A program made the position numbers and the translations under genes. DNA of 64,000 nucleotides from contig OZ241834.1 of assembly GCA_965202585.1 (NCBI GenBank), positions 30,938,001 to 31,002,000 of the forward strand, written 5' to 3'. Below the pieces are notes generated by a model. That model was not told the origin of the DNA and searched no databases. It saw nothing but the letters and a program-made list of their open reading frames with translations. Shown here piece by piece: positions 28,101 to 44,000 of this stretch (positions within the stretch are counted from its first letter, which is position 1; each line of letters starts with the position of its first letter). This DNA comes from Thalia democratica (taxonomy: Eukaryota).

Positions 28101-30755
28101 AGTAAAAAAATACTGTTCAGAACATTAATCAAAACCTTGTTTTTGCTTTTACTCTGAAGGTATGATAGTAAAATAAAAAAATTAAAACTTGATTTAGTTT
28201 CATCAAGTCTGTTTGCGCTTCGCATATCTAAAAGTACTTCAACATTATTTTTTTAACGCGTTAATTAATCAAATATAACTCTTATTCAAAGTTCGAAAAA
28301 ACTTTATAAAGATTTGTTTTAGAAGTATAACAAAAATTAAAACTTCAAACTATATATCAGTAAGTTAAAATCTATTTACTTTTTAAAACTGTTAAAATCA
28401 TAAATGCTTAAAAAATAAATTCTAAAAAGCCAAGCTAACTTTAACCAATTTATACCAATTAGCTCAAATGTTAAAAGAAATAATTGCTGATAGACATAAT
28501 TTGCATTATGTCTATCACGTTATTGGCTGGAAAAGTAATTGTTGTTAGTTGAAAATAAAAAAATGTTTTGATTTATACCATATTTATATGACAATAAAAA
28601 GTTCCATACAATTGTGTAAATAATAAAAATCATGCTGATACTTTTTCTTATAGTTTATATTGTGATTGTTATTGAAAAACTTAAAATTTTGTTTTAGACC
28701 AAGATAAACTGTTCAAAAACTACATTTTTTTTCTTACTTGCTTTAAAACTGTATCACGTATTTTAATACCTATCTTTTAAGTAGTTTTATAAATATATTT
28801 TATTGATGTTTTCTAAAACAAATTGGACTTTGAACTTTGCGCTGTATTAACAAAACTACCTTATAAAAAATCTCATAGACATCGCACATATTGTACACTT
28901 ATTAACACTAAGTTAGTTTGTGTAATTTTTACTTGTGCACTAAACAGCCTAAAGCTAAATATAAGATTACTAAACTGAAACTAAGTGTCAAATCAAATAA
29001 ATGTTCTAAAGTAGCAGCTAGGAAAAAAAAGTTAATAATTAACAACTTTCTATGCAGTTCAACTTTTATAAAGTTTTTGATTAGTCTGCAGAACCGAGTT
29101 GATTTAAAAATGTAAAGTGTTTACTTTTTTTGGTTTAGGCTAATTGAAAATTTGAATTACACTTGTAATAGTTTTTTTAGTTTTGAGCCTAACTTATGAA
29201 ATTTTGTTTTGTAAAAGTAAACTGTAGAGATAAAAACTTTTAGTTAAGTATTTAGAAATTTTAAATACTTAATAAAGTATATAACACTTCTAACTCTTCA
29301 ATGCAATATTGTTAGCATGATTTTTACTTGCTACGTGTAAATAAAAAAGTGATTATTTCACACTTTTTATATAAAACAATACTTTAATATTAACTGTTTA
29401 TATAAAAATAGTTAAAGCTCAATTACTATTATAATTATGGCTGAAATAACTACAAAAGTACAAAGCTGAATTAAAGTTTAAGCTTATTAATTTTTGAAAA
29501 CAAATTATTTTTAGAAAAAGATAAACTTGACAAATGGTTATTAAGTTGTAATCTTTCAAATTTTCACTGCTTTTAAAAAACTTGTTTTACATTGTTTTTT
29601 GATTCGCTATTTTTTTATGGCTATAAACTTCAAAACCGTTTTTTTTTTTTAAATATTAGTATTTATTTTTATGTTTGTTTCGATAACTACATTAAAATTT
29701 AAAGAACGTTTTAATATTTAACTAAACCTTAAGTTAATAAAGTTTAAAATACTTTTACTACGTATTTCATTGGTTTACATTAAAGTTTAGATCTACAGAA
29801 ATTACAATTTTTTCTTAAAATATCTTTTAACTAAATGTTCAAGAACATATCTACAATGCTTGCTCGTGTAAAACATTGCAAATGATGTAATTTCACAAAA
29901 TTTACAAAGTAAATTCAAATTTGTATGGCTTACTTTATTATAATCAAATTTAACTGACAGAATTGTTAAAAAAAAATTTAATTCAAGACTTAAAAAAACA
30001 TAATGCTTATTAAAAGTTTTTTTGTTGTTATTTAGCCCTTCACTTAGATTTTTTTATTTGCATAACAATAAATTTGTTTTTTACCTCTTTTTGTATTTTT
30101 TAATTGTACTAAATTGAAAAAATTCAACTACGTCTGACAATAAGCTGATATTTTATAATCCTAAAACTGAATACTGAAATACGACTGTGAGAAAAGTTTC
30201 CTATACTCTCAATAATATGCAATCTGATTTATATAGCAAAAAACATATACCTACACAAATTTAAAGAACTTCTACAAATGTGTAAGTTTTCAAATACATA
30301 CTAAACTCTTTTAAATTAATTTTTTTACTAAAAAGTGGCAAAAAAATACGGCTGATGTAAAAGTGTTTATGCATTGTTAGTTAAATCTTTAATTTAAACC
30401 AAATATATTCAGGCTTAGGAACTTTATAATAAGAACGAAGTTTAATAAGGTTTAGCTTTTAGCAGAATTACAAAAAATTATAGTATATTAATCTTTACAA
30501 AACAGACACAAATTTCAAGCTATCTTGTTTTATTTATTAAACAACATTTTTCGTCAAAATTGTGCTTATTTTCGCAACCATTGACAATCAGTTTTCAAAA
30601 GCTGACCAACAAAATGTTTACTTAATGATTATAATTTTAGTGTCTAAAATTAACAAGCTTTACTTATTTGTTTTCAAAGTAAGTATAAGAAATCTTTGAT
30701 TTTTCTAACTTATAGTTTATTCACGCTCTAGCAACTTTCGCAAATAACAAAAGCA

Positions 30756-32600
30756 TCAAAAATCTTCATCAAAGTTCTGAGGGATCTTGCACGAGTTCCT
30801 CTCTCTTCCCTCCCTGACCTTCTTCCTTGCCTCCATCGGAAAATACTCCTCGTGCTTCTTGTAGTCGAAGGTCGTCGGAGGGGCGAGCAGTTCCGTGGTG
30901 GAACCCCTGCTCGCGTCACCCAGGTATGACGTCATCAGATCGTCAAAGTTTTTCTTCATTGGGGTTTTCCCCGAAGGCGAGGTGTACTTGAGCACCTCCT
31001 GGCTGCACGGAAGCAGAAGGTCCTCGTCGTCCTCGATCGAATTCATTTTTCTGTTGAATTTTTTTGCTTTTATTTTCAAATTTAATCTTTTACTAAACGA
31101 ATTCGGTCTTAAATAAGCGTCAACCTTGGTTGAAACAGTTTTAATATTTGAGAAATTAATGTTTCGGTATTGTTTTAGCATTTTTTAGTAAAATAAACAT
31201 TTTGTCGATAGCCTAAATTTATGAAAACAAAAACTCAACAAACAACAAAAGTTCTAAATAAAAACTCACCTCATCGATGCGTTCATGACGTCATCGTGAC
31301 GCGACCGCAGCTTACGGTACGACGCGGGTTCTTTAACGGGGGCTCTCCCTCCGGTGGTGAGAAAGTCCTCTTGCGGCGACGTGAACTTGGCCAGCTCCAT
31401 CTGCAGGTGGCGTTTCTCCTGCGCCCTCTTGTGCTTGAGCATGAGCAGGTCGTAGTCGAGGAAGTCGCTGTTCCTGCTCTGCTGTGACGTCACGCTGGCG
31501 CGGTTGGCTTCCGTGACGTCATGGCGGTTGCTGGCCCGCTCCAGAAGGTCGTCGATCGGCTGCAGGAACTGAAAAGTTGTTGTTTTTAGAGCTGAGTTAC
31601 CAATTTTTAAGGTATATTGTGACAAACCTCAGGCATTTCTTTATCCTTGTTGGTGAACTCGTCAATGTGTTGTTTTTCCAAATAGTCGTTTGGGTTCAAC
31701 AACAGCTGTAAAAAATATTGAAAAAGTTTGTATAACTTAAGTATATTTTTTTCTTTTAAACACTTTTAAAGAGACTGAGCTTTTGTCTAAAATAAATAAT
31801 TTTAAACCTTTAAAAAAATCTTCGTTGTATAAAGTTTATGATTTCTTGTTTTAAAACCAAACATTTTTGAAAGCCTTTAACACTTTATTACTTTTAAATA
31901 AATGTAACTAAAAAAAAGTAGTAATTATTTTTAAGTTTTGTTTGTAGCCAGTCACTAAATACTTTGACTGTGTTATTTTCAACTTAATAAAGAAATTAAT
32001 GTCTTTTAAAACACTTGTTTTCACTTAAGTAAAACCTTTTGTTAAACTGCATTTACAAAACTATACTTACGTCGTCATCGTCATTGCTTTTTTTGCTGGT
32101 AGAAGTACTACTTCCAAAATTGTTACTCTGTCCCAAAACTTCGCTGACCGGTCTGAGTAACTGCAAATACTATGTGTTGAAACGTTTATATTTTATTTAT
32201 GTCTTATTTGATCTTACTAAAGAATTTATCTTAAAAGTTTGATAGGTTGAAAGCTTTTACACGGTACAAGTGTTGACCAACTGTGCTAAGTAAAATTTTC
32301 TGCAACAGCATATTCATACCACTTTTGTTTTGAAACAAAAATAGTAAGTTGGTAAAAAATTTGTTGACTTTACAAAAGTTACAGAAAACTGTCCAAACAT
32401 TTTAAATTATTTTTCAAGGTCATGCTTAACGACAAAACCTGGTTGTCTTCTCTTTCGCGTCGATACTTGCTCACGTCATCGTATTTATTATCCGCTAGGT
32501 GGCGCCTTCCCTGGGCCAGCTGCCTCTTGAAGGGCTCCAGCTCCCGTCTCATCGCCCCCAGTCCGGTCAGGGGGCATTTGGCTCTGCGCGGCAGAACCAT
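30756..32600 (-). CDS. Uncharacterised 307-aa protein resembling the titin M-is2 insertion; separate gene with 5 coding exons
   Basis: Exons 32600-32439, 32160-32071, 31705-31628, 31568-31270 and 31050-30756 total 924 nt, are all GT-AG and are phase-consistent. The ATG has a strong context (ACCATGG) with an in-frame upstream TAA. Codon usage is GC-rich like the titin exons. Motifs EREDNQLLRPVSE, DDDDLLLNPNDYLE, FLQPIDDLLE, SYRKLRSRHDDVM and DDEDLLLP resemble titin is2. Confidence 0.85.
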
Positions 32601-34732
32601 GGTAATTGTGATTTATGCGTCTTTGTCTTTGTTTTGAAAAATTAAACCTTACTATTTACATCACCTGTAAAAAATAAATGATTAGTGGCTGGCCGCCATT
32701 ACTGTGAATACACTGGACCCACTTTTTGATTGAGTGCTTTCGTTGACGTCCTGGTACGACTTTTAAACTGATGAGATTTTTTTGAAATACTAACTTGTTA
32801 CACTTACCTGAGTATTATGTATACTTTTCCCTAACCAACATGAAATGGTTTTTGTTGAAATTTACAGTTTTTTTCTGATTATTAAAGTGTTAGATAAATG
32901 CTGCCTTTAAAATAGCTATTAACAGTAAAGTTTGTATAAAATTATCTACAAAACATTTTTTAAAACTATAACTAATATTATACTTCGAAGTTACTAACTC
33001 TATTTAAATATTGTAAAAACTGTTTTTAAAATTAAAAGTACAATTTGTATCAAATAATATTGTAAATCCAAAAAATTATTTCAAAGATTTGTATAATATA
33101 CACTTGATTTATCTTTAATTTTTTAAAACTAAATTTTGTTAATATAATACTTAAGACCTTAACTAAATTTATATTCTACCTAAAATATTATTCAAAATTG
33201 ATCTAATATTTTTATTCTTGTAAGCTTTTACTTTTAAACATATTCTTTACCTAAAATTCTCAATAAACGCTTCAATACTTTACGTAAATAAAGACAACAT
33301 ATTCATGCATAAATAGTTTATTTTTGAAAATGTGCATAAATCTAAAGGTAAATTTCGCATAAATATGAGTTTGCATAATAATTGACTAAGTATGAGTAAT
33401 AAAAACAAGAGTAAATAGATATAAACATAAAAAAAGTGTAAAATATACTAGTTTAAATAAAATATATTGTGGTATTTACAAGAATGTATGGTATATATAC
33501 ATATAGCAACTAAATACAAAAAACTCATGCAAGATATTTACAATTTTTGAGGGATGAATTAAAAGGCACAACATTACCCCGTTTGAAAGCTTTTTGAGGG
33601 AATGAGCTCCTGACGGCATCCTGTATTGAGGGAATGTCGGATGCCGGTCAGTTTCGGGGCTTTTGTTAGTGACAATTTAAATTCGTTTGAGGGGATTTTG
33701 TTTGGGGATTCACCTTTCTGATAAACGTTCTTGAAGTTTAATCAGAGTTTTTTTTTTGTAGCTTTGCGTGTGCTACTTGTTGTATGAAGCATGAATGCAT
33801 ATGCTCATAACTATTCACTTCAGTACTCGAGTTTTTTAGCTTAGAGCTTAAAAAGACTCTTTGAAGTACTGTCACTTGGTTATTTAACCGATAAGTTGTC
33901 AGCTTTGAAAAAGCGACATACTTAGTCGGGTTAATACTGTATATGGTAGATTAAAATTAGTTCAAAGTTTTTAAAATTTATTTGGAATTTCAATTAACTT
34001 ATCAAAAAAAAAATTATTAGATTCATTAAAAAAAGTAAATAAAACATTTTGAGACTCTGTAGTTAGAGTACATAATAAACTTTGCAGTAAAATAATTCAA
34101 TAAATTGGACACGCCAGCTTTAACTGATTGCTTAAAACTTGTATGGTTTACAAACGCTCAAAAAGTATAAATACTTCTCAAGTAGCTTTGAAACATACAG
34201 TTTATTAAGGCAATAAAAAACTGGCAAATTTCCTAGAGTAATGTTGGTCCTGAAAAGTAAAAATAACAGGAGAATTCTTGCACTTGTTAGTTGTGATTAG
34301 TCGTTACACATAATCTTAATTCGTAAAAATGAAACTATAAAAATTTAAAGATATCATCAAAAAAATCATTAATACTAACTTTGAAAATTGAAAAAAAATA
34401 TTAAGTATAATCTAATAAATAGAAAAGTAATAATAAAACTAAACATTAAACATTTTCTATTCTTTGTAACATATATTTAAACTTTAAATCGTTAAACAAC
34501 TACATATACTAATAAAACATTGTACGAATGTTAACACAATCTCTTTTATTAAAAACAAAAATACTACTAAAGTAAAACTATAAAGTTATATTAGTCTAAA
34601 CATTCAAATAAAATGCTAGAGACAGTTACTTCTAAACAAAAAAAAATGAAGTAGAATGATCACTTAATTTGACAGTATAAATAGTTATGCTAGCGCAGCT
34701 AGCTGTAATATAAAACTAAACGAGCACCGTTA

Positions 34733-35006
34733 TGACGTCATAAGAAAATCTTGAAACAGCTGTTTCGACAAGTCACGTGGCGTGACGGCAGCAAAGATCC
34801 AAGAAAAGCCTATGACGTCACAACCGAAGCGAAACTCGATAAAACCGCGACGTGCAGCGAATTTTCAGTGACTCAAGATGCAAACAAAGTTGAAACTCCG
34901 TCGTTGAAAACAGCTGACGTCACAATTTGCCGAGTTACGCTTCAAATTGCTCTAAAATTCGAATGATTGACGTCATTTAAATGACGTTGACGCCTAGGTG
35001 ACGTCT
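34733..35006. promoter_or_regulatory. Cluster of CRE palindromes and E-boxes in the titin 3' UTR / upstream of the is2-like gene
   Basis: TGACGTCA at 34733, 34813, 34915 and 34968. CAGCTG at 34757 and 34911. CACGTG at 34774. TGACTCA at 34869. More TGACG half-sites at 34783, 34982, 34988 and 34999. Confidence 0.5.
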
Positions 35007-38000
35007 GTCGCTTCCGTTTTCGCCGCGAACTTGCAGCTCGTAGACGCCGCGGTCGGAACTCCTCGCGCCGAGGATGGTCAGCGTCGTCTGGCTCCTGGAA
35101 GCCACGATCCTGATCCTCCCCGACTCGTCTCCGTCCCTGAAAGTTATTGAAATTTAAAATTTCCAACCAGGAAACACTAAAACGTGGTTGGGTTTTTGAT
35201 ATTTACCTGAGCTGGGCTCCGTTGCGCGTCCAAACAGCTTGGAAGGGCTGTTGCTGTGACTTTACTGAGGCCGGGACGTTTATGACTTTTCCGCGGCCCA
35301 CTTGAATCTTCGACGGGATCCGGCTGATTTTCGGTCCTGATAAAGCTGCAAAATTTAATTATTTTTTTAATGTTTACAAAAAGCAACAAATTTGTTATTT
35401 TGCTTACGCATATGCGAAGTAACAAGTTTTAGTTATAGGGCTGTTTAAAAGCAATAAGAACTGTTGACCGATAAATTACTTGGTTTACTATTAGATATAC
35501 TTCCTTTAATACTTTTACTATTTAACGATAAACAAAAGTTGCCATCGTATCAAAACTGCTACTCATGCTATGACTTTAATACTTTATACATAATGATGCC
35601 TAAATAAACTAGATAAAACACACTAAAAAACTCTTACTTTTAGTTATCATTTAAAAAAAAGTTCAACTCACGCATTGGACCCTGCCTTTCAAACTCTCTG
35701 CTTATGCTTCTTCTTCTCTGGTTGGGGGAATCCCACTTTCTCATCATGCGGTGGCAGGTTTCCGGGGTCAAGCGCAAGTGGGTGCTCACCTCCTCACCAC
35801 TTGGTGACGCGAACACGCACTCGAACTTTCCCGCGTCTTCCTCGCTCACGTCATCGATGACGAGCGTATGCGTCGGACCGTGACGGGAAGTTTTGTACTT
35901 TTCCGCGTAGTCGCCGCTTAAGTAAGTGTTTACATGAAGACTAAGAATTAAACAAAATTTCTATTTACGTTTATCTAAGTGTTTAAAACTTATAAATGTT
36001 TTTAAGGTACACATTGCATAAGAAAAAAAAAACTTATAATTTTTCTAACATTCAGTATCATATACTTAAACCGAGTATAGGTATTGTGACTTCTAGGTTT
36101 AGGAAAATTTCAAACTAGATTTGAATTGTTATAACTTATCAAAAATACAAAACAATTTTTAACTACCTTGCAACGAGTTGCTGATCTTTGTACCACTGGG
36201 CCGACGAAACGAGCTGGGCGTTCGAAACTGCGCACTCGAGCCGGACGCTTCCGTCCAACTTCAGCTCGTAGTGCAGCTCACTGGTAACTCTCAGCCTTTG
36301 CTGGCTTCTCGGCATTGCAGGTGGCATCATGTACCTAAAATGTTAACAATAAATCTTTAACTTGTATGTTTTTTGTCCTACGTTGTCTGCTATAATTTTA
36401 AAAATCATTAGCTACCAATACTTTAACCGCAATTTTTTTTGAACATTTAACAGGATATTAAAAAAAAAATCAACTGTTTTCAGAAAAGAAAACTTAAAAT
36501 TTCAATATGATGTCATTGAAGTATCAAATCGTTTACAAACATTCAAGCAAACTTTCAAAAACTACCACTATTCAACTATACAGTTTAATTAAAAAACTGC
36601 CAAAATTCAATAAAATTTTGTTAATTTATTAAATAAATTGAAAAACATTCAAACAAACTTTTGCCTCATCTGCCTGGCGGCCTGGTACTGCCTGGGCAGC
36701 ACGGTCAGCGTGAAGTCGCTCACCGCGGTTTCGCCCTCTTGCGTCTCCACCACCAGCTTGTAGCTTCCCGTGTCGCTCGCGTGGCACCTGTTCACCTGCA
36801 TCGTGTGCGCGTCTCCGTGATCCCGCGTCTCGTGCTTGTCCGATGCGTCGATCGCCACACCGTTCCTGATCCAGGTGACTGTAAAGAAAATAAACATGTT
36901 TTAAAACTTAAGAAAAATTGAGAAAAACATATATATTTGAACAATGCTAATTTTTGCATATAAAATAGTTTATTATGAAATTTACAAGTTCCTATCCCTT
37001 AAAAAAATCCCCAGAAAAAAAATTAAAAATAAAGATTTGTTATTTTAAACAACATCAGCTTTAGCACAGTATCAAAATTTTTTTTAATGAAAAGCAGTTC
37101 CTACCTCTGTACGGAGCGGTCGACCTGACGCGGCTGGTGAAGACGGCGTTGTCACCTTCTCCCACCTGCTCGCTCCTCGGCTCCATGGCAAAGTAGACTT
37201 CTTCACTCGCCTCGTAGTAGTTCCTCGACCTGCTGCGGTTGCGTGACGAAGACCTCATCGCCACCTCTTCTCTGCTCGCCTGCCTTGACAGCACTCCGCT
37301 CGGAGGCCTCTGAGGCATTCTGAGCTGTCTGCTCGACGGCCTCAGTTCGACCTCGTTCCTGCTCGACGGTCTCGATCTTACGCGCTGTTGGCTGGACGGC
37401 CTGGATGCAATCCTGGCTTCTTGGTGCAGCCTGCTGGAAGACCTTGCCTCTTGCTGAATTCTGCTGGAAGACCTTGCTTCTTGTTGCAGTCTGCTGGAGG
37501 ATCTCGCTTCTTGTTGCATTCTGCTGGAAGACCTCGCCTCTTGTTGCATTCTGCTGGAGGATCTTGCCTCTTGCTGAATTCTGCTGGAGGATCTCGCCTC
37601 TAGCGCGTAATCTGCTGACCTGTTCCTGGATCTGAGCGTTTCTCTGAAAGGTCTCGAGACCGAACGGCTGCTCGGTGGTCGAGAAGTCGACTGTCTGAAG
37701 GGCAAACTCGAGGGTCCTTCTTCGTAGTTCAACCTAAAATTATTTTTACTGGTTAAAAGCTTAAACCTGGCTAGTAATTTTTATCTAATACTGTTTTAAC
37801 ACCACTACTTTGTTTTCAAAAAATCAATATTCAACGAACCTGTTCGCGTATTCCTGAGAACTCGACCTGAACTCGTTCTGGGTCACTTCGAGCGTCGCCT
37901 TGTCCGACACTTCACCGCAGTAGTTCTTGACCACCACTTCGTAAGTGCCGTTGTCGGCTTGGTGACATTTGTAAATATCAAGAGTGACCACTCCTGTAAT

Positions 38001-41000
38001 CAGATTGATTTGTAACACAAAAATATTTCAATGTTAAAATAACAAAAAAATCTTTTAAAACCAACCTTCTATGTTAGTTATCCTGTATTTGTTTCCGCCC
38101 GGCAGAATTTTCCTGCCGTTCTTGTACCAGCTGATGGTGGGCTGCGGCTTGGCGCGAACGCACGCGCTCATCTTCGTCGTGATTCCTTCCGGCACGACGT
38201 TGGACTTGAGGCGCAGTTGGAACAGCGGAGCGTAGTCTCCCGGTTTCGGCATCACCGGCTGATCCCGGTACTTGGAGCTGGTGAACTCGAGCCCGGACGA
38301 GATGTCCTCCTCGTATTCGTCGTTGTATCGAGACCTGGACAAAAGGTAAGGTTTTTTTTTGTTGCTTATACGCTATTAGCATTACTAAAACCTAAAACTG
38401 TTCTCCATACATATTCGAAAACTAATATTCTTTAACAAGTTTAAGATTATATTAAACATTAAATATAAAGGTTTACTTAAAAAAAAAACAAACCTGCTTA
38501 TTCTTCGGCTTCTTCTGTCCTGCCTCCATTTCTTCTTCCTCTCCTCGTAATCTTCCAAGTCTTCCTCCGACTCGGAGCTGCTGTAACTCCTCCTTCTGCG
38601 CCTGCCGCCTTCCATCACCCTCTGCTCTTCTTCCGCCTGCTCCCTTTCTCGCCTCTCCCGCGCCGCGTCCACCTGCAGCATCAGGTCCTCGTACTCGAAC
38701 GACTTCCTTCTTCTGAAGGTCGTTTCCTCTGCGTATCTCCTCTTCTTCTTCATCAGCATCGCCAGCCGCTCTTCTTCGGTCATAGTCGTCGTCGTCGTCG
38801 TGGTCGTTATCTGCTTGCCTCGGTCATCCGCCTCGTCCGTGAAGTCGAGCGAGCCGAAAGCGTCGGCTTGCACCGGCTCGTCGTCCGGATAACCACGTGA
38901 CTGGATATGCGAGGTGGGTTGCGGGAGGTTGTAGACCTGGGATGCGAGGATCTCGTCCTGAACCTGGTCGCGGTCTTCCACTGATCTTTCGAAGATCCTG
39001 TTGTTGTGAGTAAAAGTTAACGCTGAACTTGATTATTTCATTGTAAATATAAAACAAAAAGCTGATTAGTTACGGCTTCAACCTTTGCTAAGGTTTGTTG
39101 TTTCTTAAATTGCCTGATTACAATAAGCTATCGTAATAAAGATTTTGGATACATGGAGAACTTAACCAAAAAAAAAAAAACTGGTACTAATTGAATCTAA
39201 GTTTAACTTTAATTTTATAGTTTTAAGACTTTCTTATTCTTAATTTGCTTTATCAAAACTAAATTACTTTTTTATCAGCTAAAATGAATATCTTGAAAGC
39301 CATAACTACATGTAAGCCAACTATTTTGATATATTTAAACTTCTTACTTCAAAGGTATGTTTGCAGTCATCGCCTGATCGTGCCTCATCCTGAGGTTTTT
39401 GAACGATCCCACCTTGTCTTCGGCTCCCGCGTAGCGGCTGCTCATCGGAGCGGACAGCTGCCTCGAGACTCTTTGCGAAGATCTCACGTCGTCTTCGAAC
39501 AAGTCCGCGGCGCTGCTTCTGCGTGCTCTGCGAATGCAAAAGTTTTTGAATCTTTTTAAATTAATACTAGTTTAACATTAAGTTTTGATATGTTTATAAG
39601 AAGTTTTATCAATATGAAGCTAAAAGTAGTATTAGATTGTTGTAAAACTGTTTAGAAAATATGCAATTATAGTACAATTTACAGGCAAAATATAATAAAT
39701 TCAATATTGTTGTTTAGCAATGTAGTTCTCAATTACCTTTGATAACCAGAAGCTTGTTTGTTTTCATCGACAATGTCTGAGTAGGAAGGCACATCTTCGG
39801 CCCCTGAACGCAACCAGTCTTGGTTGGAAGCTTCAAATTCACGCAAGTGTGATCTTGAATCCTAAAAAGATAAATTTATTTATCTAAACTCTGTTTTTTG
39901 TGTAAAATTTTGAAAAAGTTTAACATTTATCTTAAAACAAATAAACAATATTTTTAAGTTTTTTTTTTAAGTTATAATTTTTAGCAAATAAAATCAACCT
40001 GGTAATCAGACTGAAGGTTATATTTGTCAATGTCTGGATATTGGTTACTTTGTTCGTCTCTCATAAACTGATTGATTTCTTGTTGCTCTAGCAGTTGACT
40101 GATTGGCGCTAGAATCTGAAGTTAGATTTTAGGTTAATTACTGATTTTATAAATTAAGCTTGTCTGAAACAAGTTTTATCAGTTGACTATTTACCTTTAA
40201 ATAAATCAATTAATTTTTAGATTTAACTTAATGCAAACAAAAATAAGTTTCTAATAAAAAAAATACTGATACTTACATCTAGAGTGTCGTGTTTTTCAAC
40301 ATTTTGCTTGCTCGTTGATGCAAGTCCACGTCTCTCGATGAAACTGTCTATGTGAGTTTGCTCAACTTGTTCGCGTACTGGCTTCGAAAGCTGAAAAACA
40401 AAGTATTTTAAAACTACACAAAAATTTTTATTTTACTTCTTTTCTTAAAGAACTATTTTGTACAATTTTTTTTTATTTAAAAAATTTTCTATATCAATTC
40501 CTTTTTTTTTAGTTATCACTTTCAACATAACTTTCAAATAGATTAATGATCTATTGCGTTGACTGAACTAAGTAGCTGACAAAAGCTTATTAGTATCAAA
40601 AATCAAATAAATAAAACCTCTTCGCTTTCTCGCTGAAGCTTGTACTTGTTGTATTCGTTGTCGTTCTTCTTGACACGTCCCTGCTCGATTTGCATTTTGA
40701 AGGGAACTGTCTGACTTCTTATTTTGCTGATTGTTTTCTTTTGCGGCATGACGTGATCGTGCTTAGAAGGCGGCATTATGACGAAATCGTCGTCGATTAT
40801 TCCGTCTTCCGCGCGCTCGATCACTCTGTTTATTACGTTTAGTTTTAAAATTAGTTTTAAAAAGTATACTTTTAAGCTTATATCCACGATCATTGTATTA
40901 CATTATACGTTAATGACAAAGACTTCTAAATTTCAAGTTTTTAAAACCACCAGTTTTCCAAGCTTATCAAAATTGTGTCAACGAAATACTAATTTTTTTT

Positions 41001-44000
41001 TTATCTCTAAATAAATAAAAACCTTTGTTTCTCCGTGAGTCTTGGCTCGGGCACCGAGTACGATTCGGTTTCAATCTTCACCACGTGCTTCTTCCTCCTA
41101 AAGTCCTCTTCTTTCTCCCCAGCCACCAGCTTCTTGTACCACATCTCCGCCTTGTCGTTCAGCCTCGACTCCCGCTCCTCGACGAAATCTTCATCCTCGA
41201 CTTCTCTCAGGTTGGGGAAGATTTTACCGACCGGCCGCATGAGGAGTTCGTACTCGTCGTCCAACTGGAGCTGCTCCTCCGCGGCCACGATCTTGTCGGC
41301 CAGCTTCGTCGCCTTCTCCCGTTCCAGAAGGTCCGCGTCCTCCTTGCGCCAGCTGGTGGAAGAAAAAAATATATCCTTAATGCTACTGTTTAAAGTGACT
41401 ACTCTTAAATTACAATAAAAAATAAGACTTAAGATTAAACAAAATTGCATGTAAAAAATTTAAGTGAAAGTACTATCTTGTATGTTTTGAAATAAAGTTC
41501 GGAATATTCAACTCACCGTTCGAGCTGACGGTGTTTGTAGGGCAGCACCTTCAGCTCTGCCTCGCACGACACCGACCCCACGTCGTTGGTGGCAACCATC
41601 TTGTAGGTTCCCGCGTCGGGCTGGCAGACGTGGCTGATCTTCATGTGGGCCTTGTTTTTGGTGTCCCACCCGAACGACCTTCTCAGGTCGCTGGAAATCT
41701 CCACCCCGTCCTTGTACCACTTCAGCTCGGGCCGGGGGCTGCCCCTGACGCCGACGCTGAAAAATCCGGTTTCGCCCTCTTCCACGTGCTGCGCGGTCAT
41801 GAGGCGGTGCAGGATCGGAGCGACTTGGTGGACTGGCGGTTCTCTTTCGGCTGTTTGGGAGAAAAACAATACGTTAGTGTTCTGGGTAGTACAGAGTTTG
41901 AATTCGATAGAAGCGTTTACACATTACTTTTAAATTTAATTGTTTTCATATAATTTATCTACGCATTACCATAACTTTTTGAAAACTTTTAAACTTAATA
42001 AACGTCGTATGCTACTCACGCAGAACTTTGATGGCGGCTCTGCACTCGTCTTGCCCGTACAAGTTCCTGGCCACGACCCACACGTGACCGCAGTCTTCAA
42101 CCGAGCAGTTTTGAACGCGCAAGGTGTGCAGGGACTTGTCCGACTCGACAGAGTACTTTTCGTCGTCTTCTTCCTTGTTGATCTCGTGGGCGTTGTGGAA
42201 CCAGCTCACTTCGCAAGGCGGGTTTATTCCGACTGTTGAATATTCAAAAACATTTACTTACCTCTAGATAAAAATTTGTAGCAAGCGTATACATAAAAAA
42301 GGAAACATGTCTTTCTAAAAAATAACGCTGTTTTAGAAAAAAATAGATTTGAAACTTATCTTACCTGCAACAGTAAACGTAGCCGACTCCCCGGCGTACA
42401 ACGTCGAGTCGAACAGCGGCAGCTTGAACTCTGGAGGTTTGTTTCGCGACTTGGCCGAGGCTTTGTTGCGCTTGTCGTCAAAGTACAAGTTTCTCAACTT
42501 TCTAGTTCTGCAAGTTTTATAAATACAGTATATTTTTTAGTTAAAAATATTCAGTGCCTTACAATATTCAATATATTATTTTCTTACCACATATCTACTT
42601 ACCTCGATTCATTATTTTCAAATATTCAAGGTTGAAAACTTACAAAGCTTTTCTTCACTGAAAGTTAACTTACCTCGATTCGTCTTGTACCATCAACAGA
42701 CAAGAGGTTTGGAAGGTGTTTCCGTCAGCTTGAAGCTGACAAGTGTAAACTTCCTCGTCAGCTCGCGACAGGTCTTTCACGTACAAGCTGCAAGATCCGT
42801 CGCGTTTGCTGCTTTCGTACTTTTCTCCCGATTCCAATTCCGCGCCGTTCTTAAGCCTGCATTTTAAAACTTAAGTTACATATATTGTATTTGAAGTACT
42901 TTTTAACATTTAAACTTCGTTTCTTAAAATAGTCAATTAAACAAAGAACTTATGCGAAACGCAAGCTACACTATGCACTTTGCATACATGTGCTTACAAA
43001 ACTGCTTCTAAATCTAACTCTGTTACGTTCTTGAGCCTACATTTAAAAATTTTGATTGTTTCAATAAGATCAATAAGTTTTAAGGTCAAAATTGTTTAAT
43101 TGTGTTTTTTATGCACGTGCTTATAAACTTCTCACCACTTCACGGCGTCTCCCTCTCCGAGGTCCTTCCACAAGCAGCTCAGCTTGACATCCTCGCCCTT
43201 CTTGCCGATGGCGTGCCGCAGCGGCGACACGAGCGGCCTCTCGGCCGACCTGACCGTCTTCGCGCTCGACTGAACGTCCGATTGTGACGTCACAGGCGCC
43301 AGGACGCGTCCCAGGGCGCAGGTTATGTCGTCGCGCGCCTCGCGGTGCCTGCTCCTGTACAGGGAGCGGTGGTACGCGGACGGGATGTTGATGTCTGGTA
43401 GGTCGCATGCGAACCACGGGTGAGAGAGCGCTTCCTGGATCGTCATCCTCTCGCTCCTGTCCTTCACCAGCAGCCTGTTGAATTTAAAGGTTTTGAACTA
43501 ATTGGTGTTAAATTATAATTAAGAACTAATTTAAATTATAGGATAATTTTTTTTCCATGTATTTTATACGATTCAATAACGAAACATATAAAAATAATCA
43601 CTTTTAAAGAATATTGAATGATAATTACTAGAAACTTTATATAATAAGTTCTTTTATTGTAATTTTTTTTATTGCTAAACAACAAACCTGTCGACAAAGT
43701 CCAGAGCTTCATCGGAAACGAGCTTCCACTCGTCTTCCTGAAGCACCACGTCTCCCTCCACCACTTTCTCCCTTATTTCGCCGCGGTTCGAACCGAGGAA
43801 GGGGGAAACGCCGGTGAGGATAACGTGCGTGACGACACCTACCGACCACATGTCGGAGCTTTTGTCGACTTGTCCGCCCGACAACAGCTCCGGGGAACCA
43901 AACTCGGCTCTGGTCAAGTTGATTTTTACGCCTAGAAAAAATAGCTCTTTGTAAATATAATTATGACCAAAGTTTTTAGTTTTATTAGATTAATTTTCTT

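Follow-up and report, generated by a model that had tools for sequence, protein, structure and literature searches.

The 64,000-nucleotide stretch of the Thalia democratica genome analysed here (the window) harbours titin on its minus strand and, 2.4 kb downstream of the titin stop codon and on the same strand, a small gene of five coding exons and 307 aa (ATG at 32600, stop at 30756). An earlier sequence-only reading had proposed an intact five-exon frame opening in the context ACCATGG, and recommended a search for an independent transcript; both the frame and the start context were confirmed, and spliced RNA contigs supported all four coding introns plus a short intron in the 5′-UTR. The introns are GT-AG throughout, with phases 0, 0, 0 and 2; RNA coverage at the gene was confined to exons, and GC content is 40–61% in exons versus 21–31% in introns.

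Coding exon 1 (32439–32600; aa 1–54; joint 32160|32439 in run X2) carries the conserved N terminus MxLPRRAKC, followed by MRRxxEPFKRxLAQGR and KYRxxRED. Exon 2 (32071–32160; aa 55–84; phase 0/0; joints 31705|32071 in runs X1, X2 and X8, and 32160|32439 in X2) starts with the motif LLRPVSEVL and continues into a variable, Ser-rich acidic linker, while exon 3 (31628–31705; aa 85–110; phase 0/0; joints 31568|31628 and 31705|32071) holds a decayed motif copy, LLLNPNDYLEKQHIDEF, where distant relatives have LLRPVGDYLEK. Exon 4 (31270–31568; aa 111–209 plus 2 nt; joints 31050|31270 in X1, X2 and X8, and 31568|31628 in X2) encodes the motif FLQPIDDLLE, a predicted helix (aa 149–173) and YRKLRSRHDD. 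The last coding exon (30756–31050; aa 210–307 plus stop; joint 31050|31270) encodes the motif EDDEDLLLPC and a lineage-specific tail, and is followed by a 3′-UTR (30700–30755) with AATAAA at 30721–30716, the X8 contig ending at 30700.

At the 5′ end, one X8 contig extends 14 letters beyond 32664, and their reverse complement, CACTCAATCAAAAA, equals genomic 32736–32723; this defines a short non-coding 5′ exon (32723–32736, minus strand; at least 14 nt seen) that is followed by a GT donor at 32722. The 5′-UTR part of coding exon 1 (32601–32664) contains a minimal ATG-TAA upstream ORF, and each of the three frames that follow the acceptor at 32664 is closed by stops, as had been read from the sequence. 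That acceptor, ttttttacag, is conserved in the related sequence L004. A TATA-like TTTAAAAG (32760–32767, minus strand), a candidate promoter element, precedes the 5′-most observed transcript position by approximately 30 nt.

Six related proteins, 33–94% identical, were found in marine metatranscriptomes. The dN/dS of the small gene was 0.09 and 0.12, values which, as a check proposed beforehand, indicate that the coding sequence is under purifying selection. Identity to a genomic contig (L001) is 87% for exon 2 and 95–97% for each of the other four exons, of which exon 5 is covered in part, with no indels; for introns it is 78–89%. Within the family, the new N terminus and the tail are conserved, and the invariant blocks (PFK..QGR, RED..LLRPV and LRxRHD) are those in common with titin's is2 insertion.

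In this genome, the whole titin insertion (38230–41352, minus strand; ~560 aa), rebuilt from RNA joints, lies between the third and fourth Ig domains after the kinase, which is the position of is2; its flanks are I-set Ig domains, with an Ig-Ig-Fn3-kinase arrangement upstream. Five of its exons, likewise defined by RNA joints, are homologous to the small gene (39348–40825, minus strand: 40825–40618, 40390–40277, 40115–39999, 39861–39737 and 39527–39348). A profile of the small-gene family matched the RNA-defined is2 with 60.9 bits (E 9e-21; single-sequence search) over is2 aa 141–364, and a profile of three distant relatives alone still reached 52 bits. With Smith-Waterman alignment, the 307-aa protein scored 139 against is2, while shuffled sequences scored 49 ± 7 with a maximum of 77 (none of 1,000 reached 139); every family member scored against is2 at z of 10–22, the distant relatives (204–211) above this genome's copy. 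Thus the similarity exceeds that of composition-matched shuffles, a comparison that the sequence-only reading had called for, and by sequence comparison the small protein is homologous to is2. Composition alone, with both sequences charged, of low complexity and rich in D, E, R, K and L, and with a HMMER bias term of 14.7 bits, can be dismissed as the source of the resemblance, since 1,000 global and 1,000 within-20-residue-window shuffles gave at most 7.7 bits, the reversed sequence gave −11, and the match is colinear with intron positions and phases in common.

The colinear match extends over ~200 residues. Exon 1 aligns to the 3′ half of titin exon 40825–40618, exon 2 to titin exon 40390–40277, exon 3 to titin exon 40115–39999 (ILAPISQLLEQQEINQF), and the LRxRHD block of exon 4 to titin exon 39527–39348; intron column and phase are identical for exons 2 and 3. 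Two phase-0 introns thereby share alignment column and phase with is2, and a third intron, of phase 2, falls within two residues. Exon 5 alone showed no significant similarity to titin (z 1.4), nor was a titin counterpart detected for the first 12 residues. Motif pairings with is2 had been drawn by eye from the sequence, and two of them, SYRKLRSRHDD with SFKNLRMRHDQ and NDYLEKQHIDEF with QLLEQQEINQF, proved colinear, but the other two did not hold: REDNQ-LLRPVSE pairs with RESEE-LSKPVRE of the 40390 exon rather than with DEYELLMRPVG, and the pairing of DFLDYDLLMLKHK with SFEYEDLMLQVD is out of order and without profile support.

The relatedness to is2, together with a position on titin's own strand 2.4 kb beyond its stop, is what could make the small-gene exons an alternative 3′ end of titin, that is, a Mex-like optional exon set. 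However, titin has its own end: the stop codon (TAA, 34979–34977) is followed by a ~1.65-kb 3′-UTR (33300–34979, minus strand) with AATAAA at 33322, X8 RNA covers this 3′-UTR from 34954 down to 33352, and the small gene starts ~560 bp beyond the 3′-UTR end near 33300. Between the genes, depth was 0.57 in 32961–33157 and zero in 32764–32960. Among the RNA contigs, no supported joint between titin exons and small-gene exons was found, nor any splicing of the latter to upstream titin exons in one frame; the sole cross joint (34450 to 31788) had a depth of 2 and landed within an intron. Furthermore, the acceptor at 32664 is fed by the local mini-exon 32736–32723 and opens onto the three-frame stops, and the orthologous mRNAs are ~1 kb with in-frame stops upstream of the ATG (in L002, L004 and L005). 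An alternative titin end is thus highly implausible, and the view that these are not titin exons stood up: the small gene is an independent protein-coding gene that has a short 5′ exon, a start codon and a poly(A) signal of its own. Mean contig word depth, a rough guide only, was 485–560 in the small gene versus ~110 in the last exons of titin for X8, and 41 versus 8.6 for X2. The RNA runs were of whole communities or of unspecified tissue.

The family appears narrow. The family profile, searched at E up to 10 against 5.8 billion proteins (170–535 aa, which excludes full-length titins), retrieved only the same six relatives and P0009, a genomic mis-call. Exon 4 against 1.84 billion representatives retrieved, besides orthologues, only a repeat protein, P0004, that was discarded as a spurious low-complexity match, with no titin and no stand-alone relative elsewhere; JGI metagenome contigs yielded no confirmed locus. 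The marine planktonic carriers of the gene are probably pelagic tunicates. With a known range of a handful of marine planktonic sequences, the reach of the finding is limited, and synteny with titin is a statement on the Thalia democratica genome only, the other genomic contig (L001) spanning just 2 kb.

The homology to is2, together with the common intron columns and phases, points to an old partial duplication at the DNA level; its age follows from the nucleotide comparison, where no significant similarity between the small gene and the is2 exons is left. A block of is2 exons, introns included, would have been duplicated in tandem, and the copy would later have gained the N-terminal extension (MxLPRRAKC) and its own tail. 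The reverse direction, in which the small gene is ancestral and titin gained is2 by capturing a copy, draws on three observations: homology by itself gives no direction, the distant members are closer to is2 than this genome's copy, and the motif exons are symmetric phase-0 exons that are readily inserted into other genes. Against such a donor stand the absence of any stand-alone relative beyond the six marine sequences in both searches above, and the presence of the motif in mouse titin, probably within its M-band insertion, by which is2 would already have been in titin before this lineage split from vertebrates.

The motif evidence is as follows. Along with the PFKxxxxQGR and LRxRHD blocks of is2, the small protein retains the motif acidic-(L/F)LxP(V/I/C)..(Y/L)L in three to four copies, the majority at the start of a phase-0 exon. 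Among mouse titin phosphosite windows are SDEELLLPIDDYL (S33880) and EEEELLRPV (S34005), both of which precede an Ig at S34207 and KSP repeats at S34451–34470 (PMC7174613). These are two short windows, tentatively placed in is2 from residue numbers and neighbouring windows, and they show the same acidic-LLxP(I/V)..YL motif (LLLPIDDYL, ELLRPV) (PMC7174613). Of four strings that the sequence-only reading had attributed to human titin is2, DEELLLPIDDYL and the core EELLRPV of a second are thus seen in mouse (PMC7174613), while YAELRERH was not found in a literature search. Of the two origins offered by the sequence-only reading, partial duplication of titin is therefore favoured over an ancestral donor, on the common introns, the motif inside mouse titin and the lack of a stand-alone relative beyond one marine group. 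The donor scenario is considered quite improbable, and the small gene is very probably both independent and a paralogue of central is2 that arose by an old tandem duplication.

The small protein is predicted to be mostly disordered: its AlphaFold2 model has a mean pLDDT of 54 and a pTM of 0.17, with one confident helix (aa 149–173). It lacks an Ig domain by which it could be built into the M-band lattice. In line with the earlier remark that no protein of this type was known, the small protein matched no named family: no Pfam hit reached its cut-off for the individual exons or for four relatives searched at full length, and the family profile found no match among PDB sequences at E up to 10. 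Three ESM Atlas searches were uninformative (best scores 0.56–0.72), and Rfam gave no match over 30000–35200.

In vertebrates, FHL2/DRAL binds the is2 region of titin (PMC7023976). With the docking motifs of is2 available in an unattached protein, the partners that dock on titin is2, in vertebrates FHL2/DRAL (an adaptor) and its metabolic enzymes, would bind here too; the small protein would then either add to the docking capacity or serve as competitor or buffer (a decoy or adaptor). The sequence-only reading had likewise suggested a sarcomeric protein that may act at the M-band, against titin or alongside it, which is a hypothesis. Taken as a whole, an independent gene of duplication origin that carries free is2 docking motifs is probably the best explanation, with the docking function itself put forward tentatively, as one possibility. 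Yet more speculative, and in our view doubtful, is the idea that acidic-LLxP(V/I)..YL is a chordate-wide docking motif that defines the role of is2, here turned into a separately regulated, abundant, soluble protein that would compete naturally with titin's insertion and so tune the amounts of FHL-type adaptor and metabolic enzyme retained at the M-band. A titin-derived gene could instead serve a non-sarcomeric role, such as that of a disordered protein elsewhere in the body; the family-wide conservation of the new N terminus and tail would fit this, as would the second motif copy, whose decay in this lineage (LLLNPN) argues against a strict need for every motif. However, the blocks that are invariant in the family are precisely those in common with is2, and the depth of the small gene tracks that of titin in two independent runs at a ratio of ~5:1, which is weak evidence; a non-sarcomeric role is considered unlikely.

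The M-band insertions of titin are long unstructured stretches whose functions are mostly obscure, and for is2, FHL2/DRAL binding is to our knowledge the only function reported. The small gene provides a natural free version of the is2 core, conserved and highly expressed, and residues under selection can be read from the blocks that titin and the free protein have both retained, one motif of which also occurs in mouse titin. Its small, tractable product suits binding and localisation work that is hard to do on titin itself, and the gene clearly illustrates how an unstructured region of a giant protein can give rise to a new gene, via duplication of symmetric exons.

Compared with is2 of titin (between Ig M3 and M4), the small protein is alike in its ~200-residue homologous sequence, motif repeats, PFK..QGR and LRxRHD blocks, intron positions and phases, and predicted disorder; unlike is2, it is made from a separate transcript with a start codon and tail of its own, lacks flanking Ig domains and matches central is2 only. 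Likewise, OBSL1 (the smaller obscurin-like paralogue), Novex-3 and Cronos are shorter products or paralogues that derive from portions of giant sarcomeric proteins, but these are Ig/Fn3 arrays, Novex-3 and Cronos being titin isoforms, and none of them duplicates an unstructured insertion on its own. A parallel is telokin (kinase-related protein), in which the C-terminal Ig of smooth-muscle MLCK is expressed separately: there too, part of a large muscle protein with a kinase domain is produced as an abundant small protein in its own right, able to act on its parent's partners. The small gene is not a fragment of the telokin type, as its exons lie outside titin and have no significant nucleotide similarity to the is2 exons: telokin is a folded Ig whose sequence is that of its parent and which is transcribed from a promoter inside the parent gene, whereas the small gene represents a duplicated, diverged and, by prediction, disordered segment.

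The small gene on the minus strand 3′ of titin is a separate, expressed and selected paralogue of the core of is2, the titin M-band insertion that separates the third Ig domain after the kinase from the fourth. Its five coding exons (32600-32439, 32160-32071, 31705-31628, 31568-31270 and 31050-30756) join into a 307-codon frame with ACCATGG at its start, and are separated by GT-AG introns of phases 0, 0, 0 and 2; GC content is 21-31% in the introns and 40-61% in the exons. For RNA evidence, 30400-36300 was compared with contigs from one run of the window's own organism (X8) and from three runs of marine metatranscriptomes (X1-X3). Contigs of X8 carried splice joints and their coverage was restricted to exons, thus X8 behaves as RNA. 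On the minus strand, each of the four coding introns was confirmed, the joints 31050/31270 and 31705/32071 by X1, X2 and X8, and 31568/31628 and 32160/32439 by X2. The five-exon, 307-aa ORF first described from the sequence was therefore borne out by both its exon frame and spliced RNA.

The same-strand gene upstream encodes Ig-Ig-Fn3-kinase and then Ig domains with insertions between them, a layout that identifies it as titin (this architecture, with the ocean samples, suggests a marine planktonic chordate, probably a pelagic tunicate); its last exon carries the end of an I-set Ig domain and TAA at 34979-34977. RNA covers the titin 3′-UTR from this stop to about 33352 (AATAAA at 33322), and X8 depth between the two genes is 0.57 in 32961-33157 and 0 in 32764-32960. 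One X8 contig extends 14 letters past the small gene's acceptor at 32664, and these equal genomic 32736-32723 followed by GT, indicating a very small first exon without coding sequence and a 5′-UTR intron of 58 nt. About 30 nt upstream of these most 5′ transcript letters lies TTTAAAAG, a putative promoter element judging by its sequence. At the other end, a poly(A) signal (AATAAA) is found at 30721 and the RNA ends at 30700. With its own 5′ exon, stops in all three frames of its 5′-UTR and no supported joint from titin exons among the X1-X3 and X8 contigs over the compared region, the gene stands alone, as the sequence-only reading had held. Contig word depth, a rough measure only, was ~5-fold that of titin's last exons in X8 and X2 alike.

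Two further features were seen in these untranslated regions. The small gene's 5′-UTR holds a minimal upstream ORF (ATG-TAA, 32661-32656) that is retained in a relative's mRNA (L004, positions 15-20). Within the titin 3′-UTR, 33534-33933 shows a contig depth in the metatranscriptomes far above that of titin coding exons (up to about 480 versus 8.6 in X2) and several indel variants; this stretch, for which no Rfam match was found, could be a repetitive element, or else be transcribed separately.

The titin exon chain from 42507 to 37840 was set by RNA joints, and its is2 spans about 560 residues encoded on the minus strand by exons 41352-41023, 40825-40618, 40390-40277, 40115-39999, 39861-39737, 39527-39348 and 38997-38494, ending at the start of exon 38334-38066. 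Against this is2, the profile HMM built from all seven members of the family scored 60.9 bits (E 9e-21 for one sequence), aligning its positions 13-216 with is2 residues 141-364, while reversed is2 scored -11 and shuffles reached at most 4.6 bits (1000 global) or 7.7 bits (1000 within 20-residue windows). A profile of three distant relatives alone gave 52 bits. The Smith-Waterman score of the window's small protein was 139 (shuffles, 49 ± 7), so the relationship to is2 claimed from the sequence was upheld. Distant relatives scored above it (204-211; z about 20-22), hence the window's copy is more derived and the match does not stem from recent gene conversion; at the nucleotide level, the small gene and the is2 exons no longer resemble each other significantly. 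In titin itself, a six-letter CGGACG insertion at 39486, an in-frame length variant within an is2 exon, was carried by a minority of X8 contig depth (19/151). An exon of titin after the fourth M-band Ig contains a tandem 30-nt repeat (37383-37622; six overlapping 90-nt copies at 30-nt spacing) encoding serine-rich QQEARSSSR(I/L/M) decapeptides within the next insertion.

Searches that used first exon 4 and later alignments as queries recovered six relatives, all from marine metatranscriptomes or metagenomes and none bearing a name or Pfam domain; identity to the window's protein is 94% (P0005), 89% (P0002), 79% (P0006), 40% (P0003 and P0007) and 33% (P0008). Their mRNA contigs L002, L004 and L005, about 1 kb each, have in-frame stops 5′ of the ATG. 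The protein call of P0003 is 16 residues too short, and its mRNA opens with MTLPRRAKC like the window's protein, thus the start codon is conserved. Compared with the genomic contig L001, identity is 95-97% in exons 1, 3 and 4 and in as much of exon 5 as is covered, 87% in linker exon 2 and 78-89% in introns, with no indels in the exons compared. The dN/dS comparison that had been suggested gave 0.09 (L001) and 0.12 (L004): the gene is conserved under purifying selection. P0003 and P0008 (L002 and L005) share run ERR1719466, yet are only 51% identical to each other; they may represent two species or two paralogues of one species.

No Ig or Fn3 domain was found in the small protein. An AlphaFold2 model from a six-sequence alignment (first row P0005) had a mean pLDDT of 54 and pTM of 0.17, with one confident helix (aa 149-173) and a weaker one across the LRxRHD block. 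Invariant family columns concentrate in MRRxxEPFKRxLAQGR, RED..LLRPV.E.LG, P.FL.PIDD.L, DF.DY..L...H.R, LR.RHD and D..L.PC, several of which are the blocks common to is2. In vertebrate titin, FHL2/DRAL is stated to bind is2 (PMC7023976). The small protein may be a free carrier of is2 motifs for the binding partners of is2, one that would supplement docking capacity or else be a competitor of titin. In agreement with the earlier claim of novelty, no such protein was described in Pfam, PDB sequences, source names or the literature searched.

As for origin, introns 1 and 2 of the small gene each share a column with a phase-0 intron of titin under profile-guided alignment (slash, intron: REDNQ/LLRPV versus RESEE/LSKPV, and DDDD/LLLNPN versus DTLD/ILAPIS), and its last, phase-2 intron lies two residues off a phase-2 titin intron, just past the LRxRHD block. 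These common columns and phases disfavour retroposition and point to duplication of genomic DNA together with its introns. Both genes also share a repeated unit composed of an acidic stretch and then (L/F)LxP(V/I/C)..(Y/L)L; three phase-0 exons of the small gene open with it, as do two in titin. The exon 3 copy has decayed in the window's lineage (LLLNPN, LLMNTN, LLMSTN), thus not every copy is needed. In X8 the start of this exon (31688-31705) occurs in two versions of the same depth (about 499 versus 485) that differ over 18 letters; the assembly has LLLNPN, whereas the second version reads LLMSTN. They are probably two alleles, the alternative being a paralogue.

The same motif recurs in mouse titin (A2ASS6). 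Two of its windows, S33880 and S34005, would sit within is2, judging by the known M-band layout. The comparison rests on 31-residue windows from a phosphoproteomics table, in which S33880 contains SDEELLLPIDDYLAMK and S34005 contains EEEELLRPVTTTQ, both following the Fn3 at S32936 and preceding the Ig window S34207 and the KSP repeats S34451-34470 (PMC7174613). The motif is thus present inside vertebrate titin, which speaks for titin as the source of the duplication rather than as the recipient of a captured gene. Between the two origins that the sequence-only reading had left side by side, capture of a donor gene by titin is accordingly the less favoured, and partial duplication of titin is preferred on both the shared introns and the motif in mouse titin.
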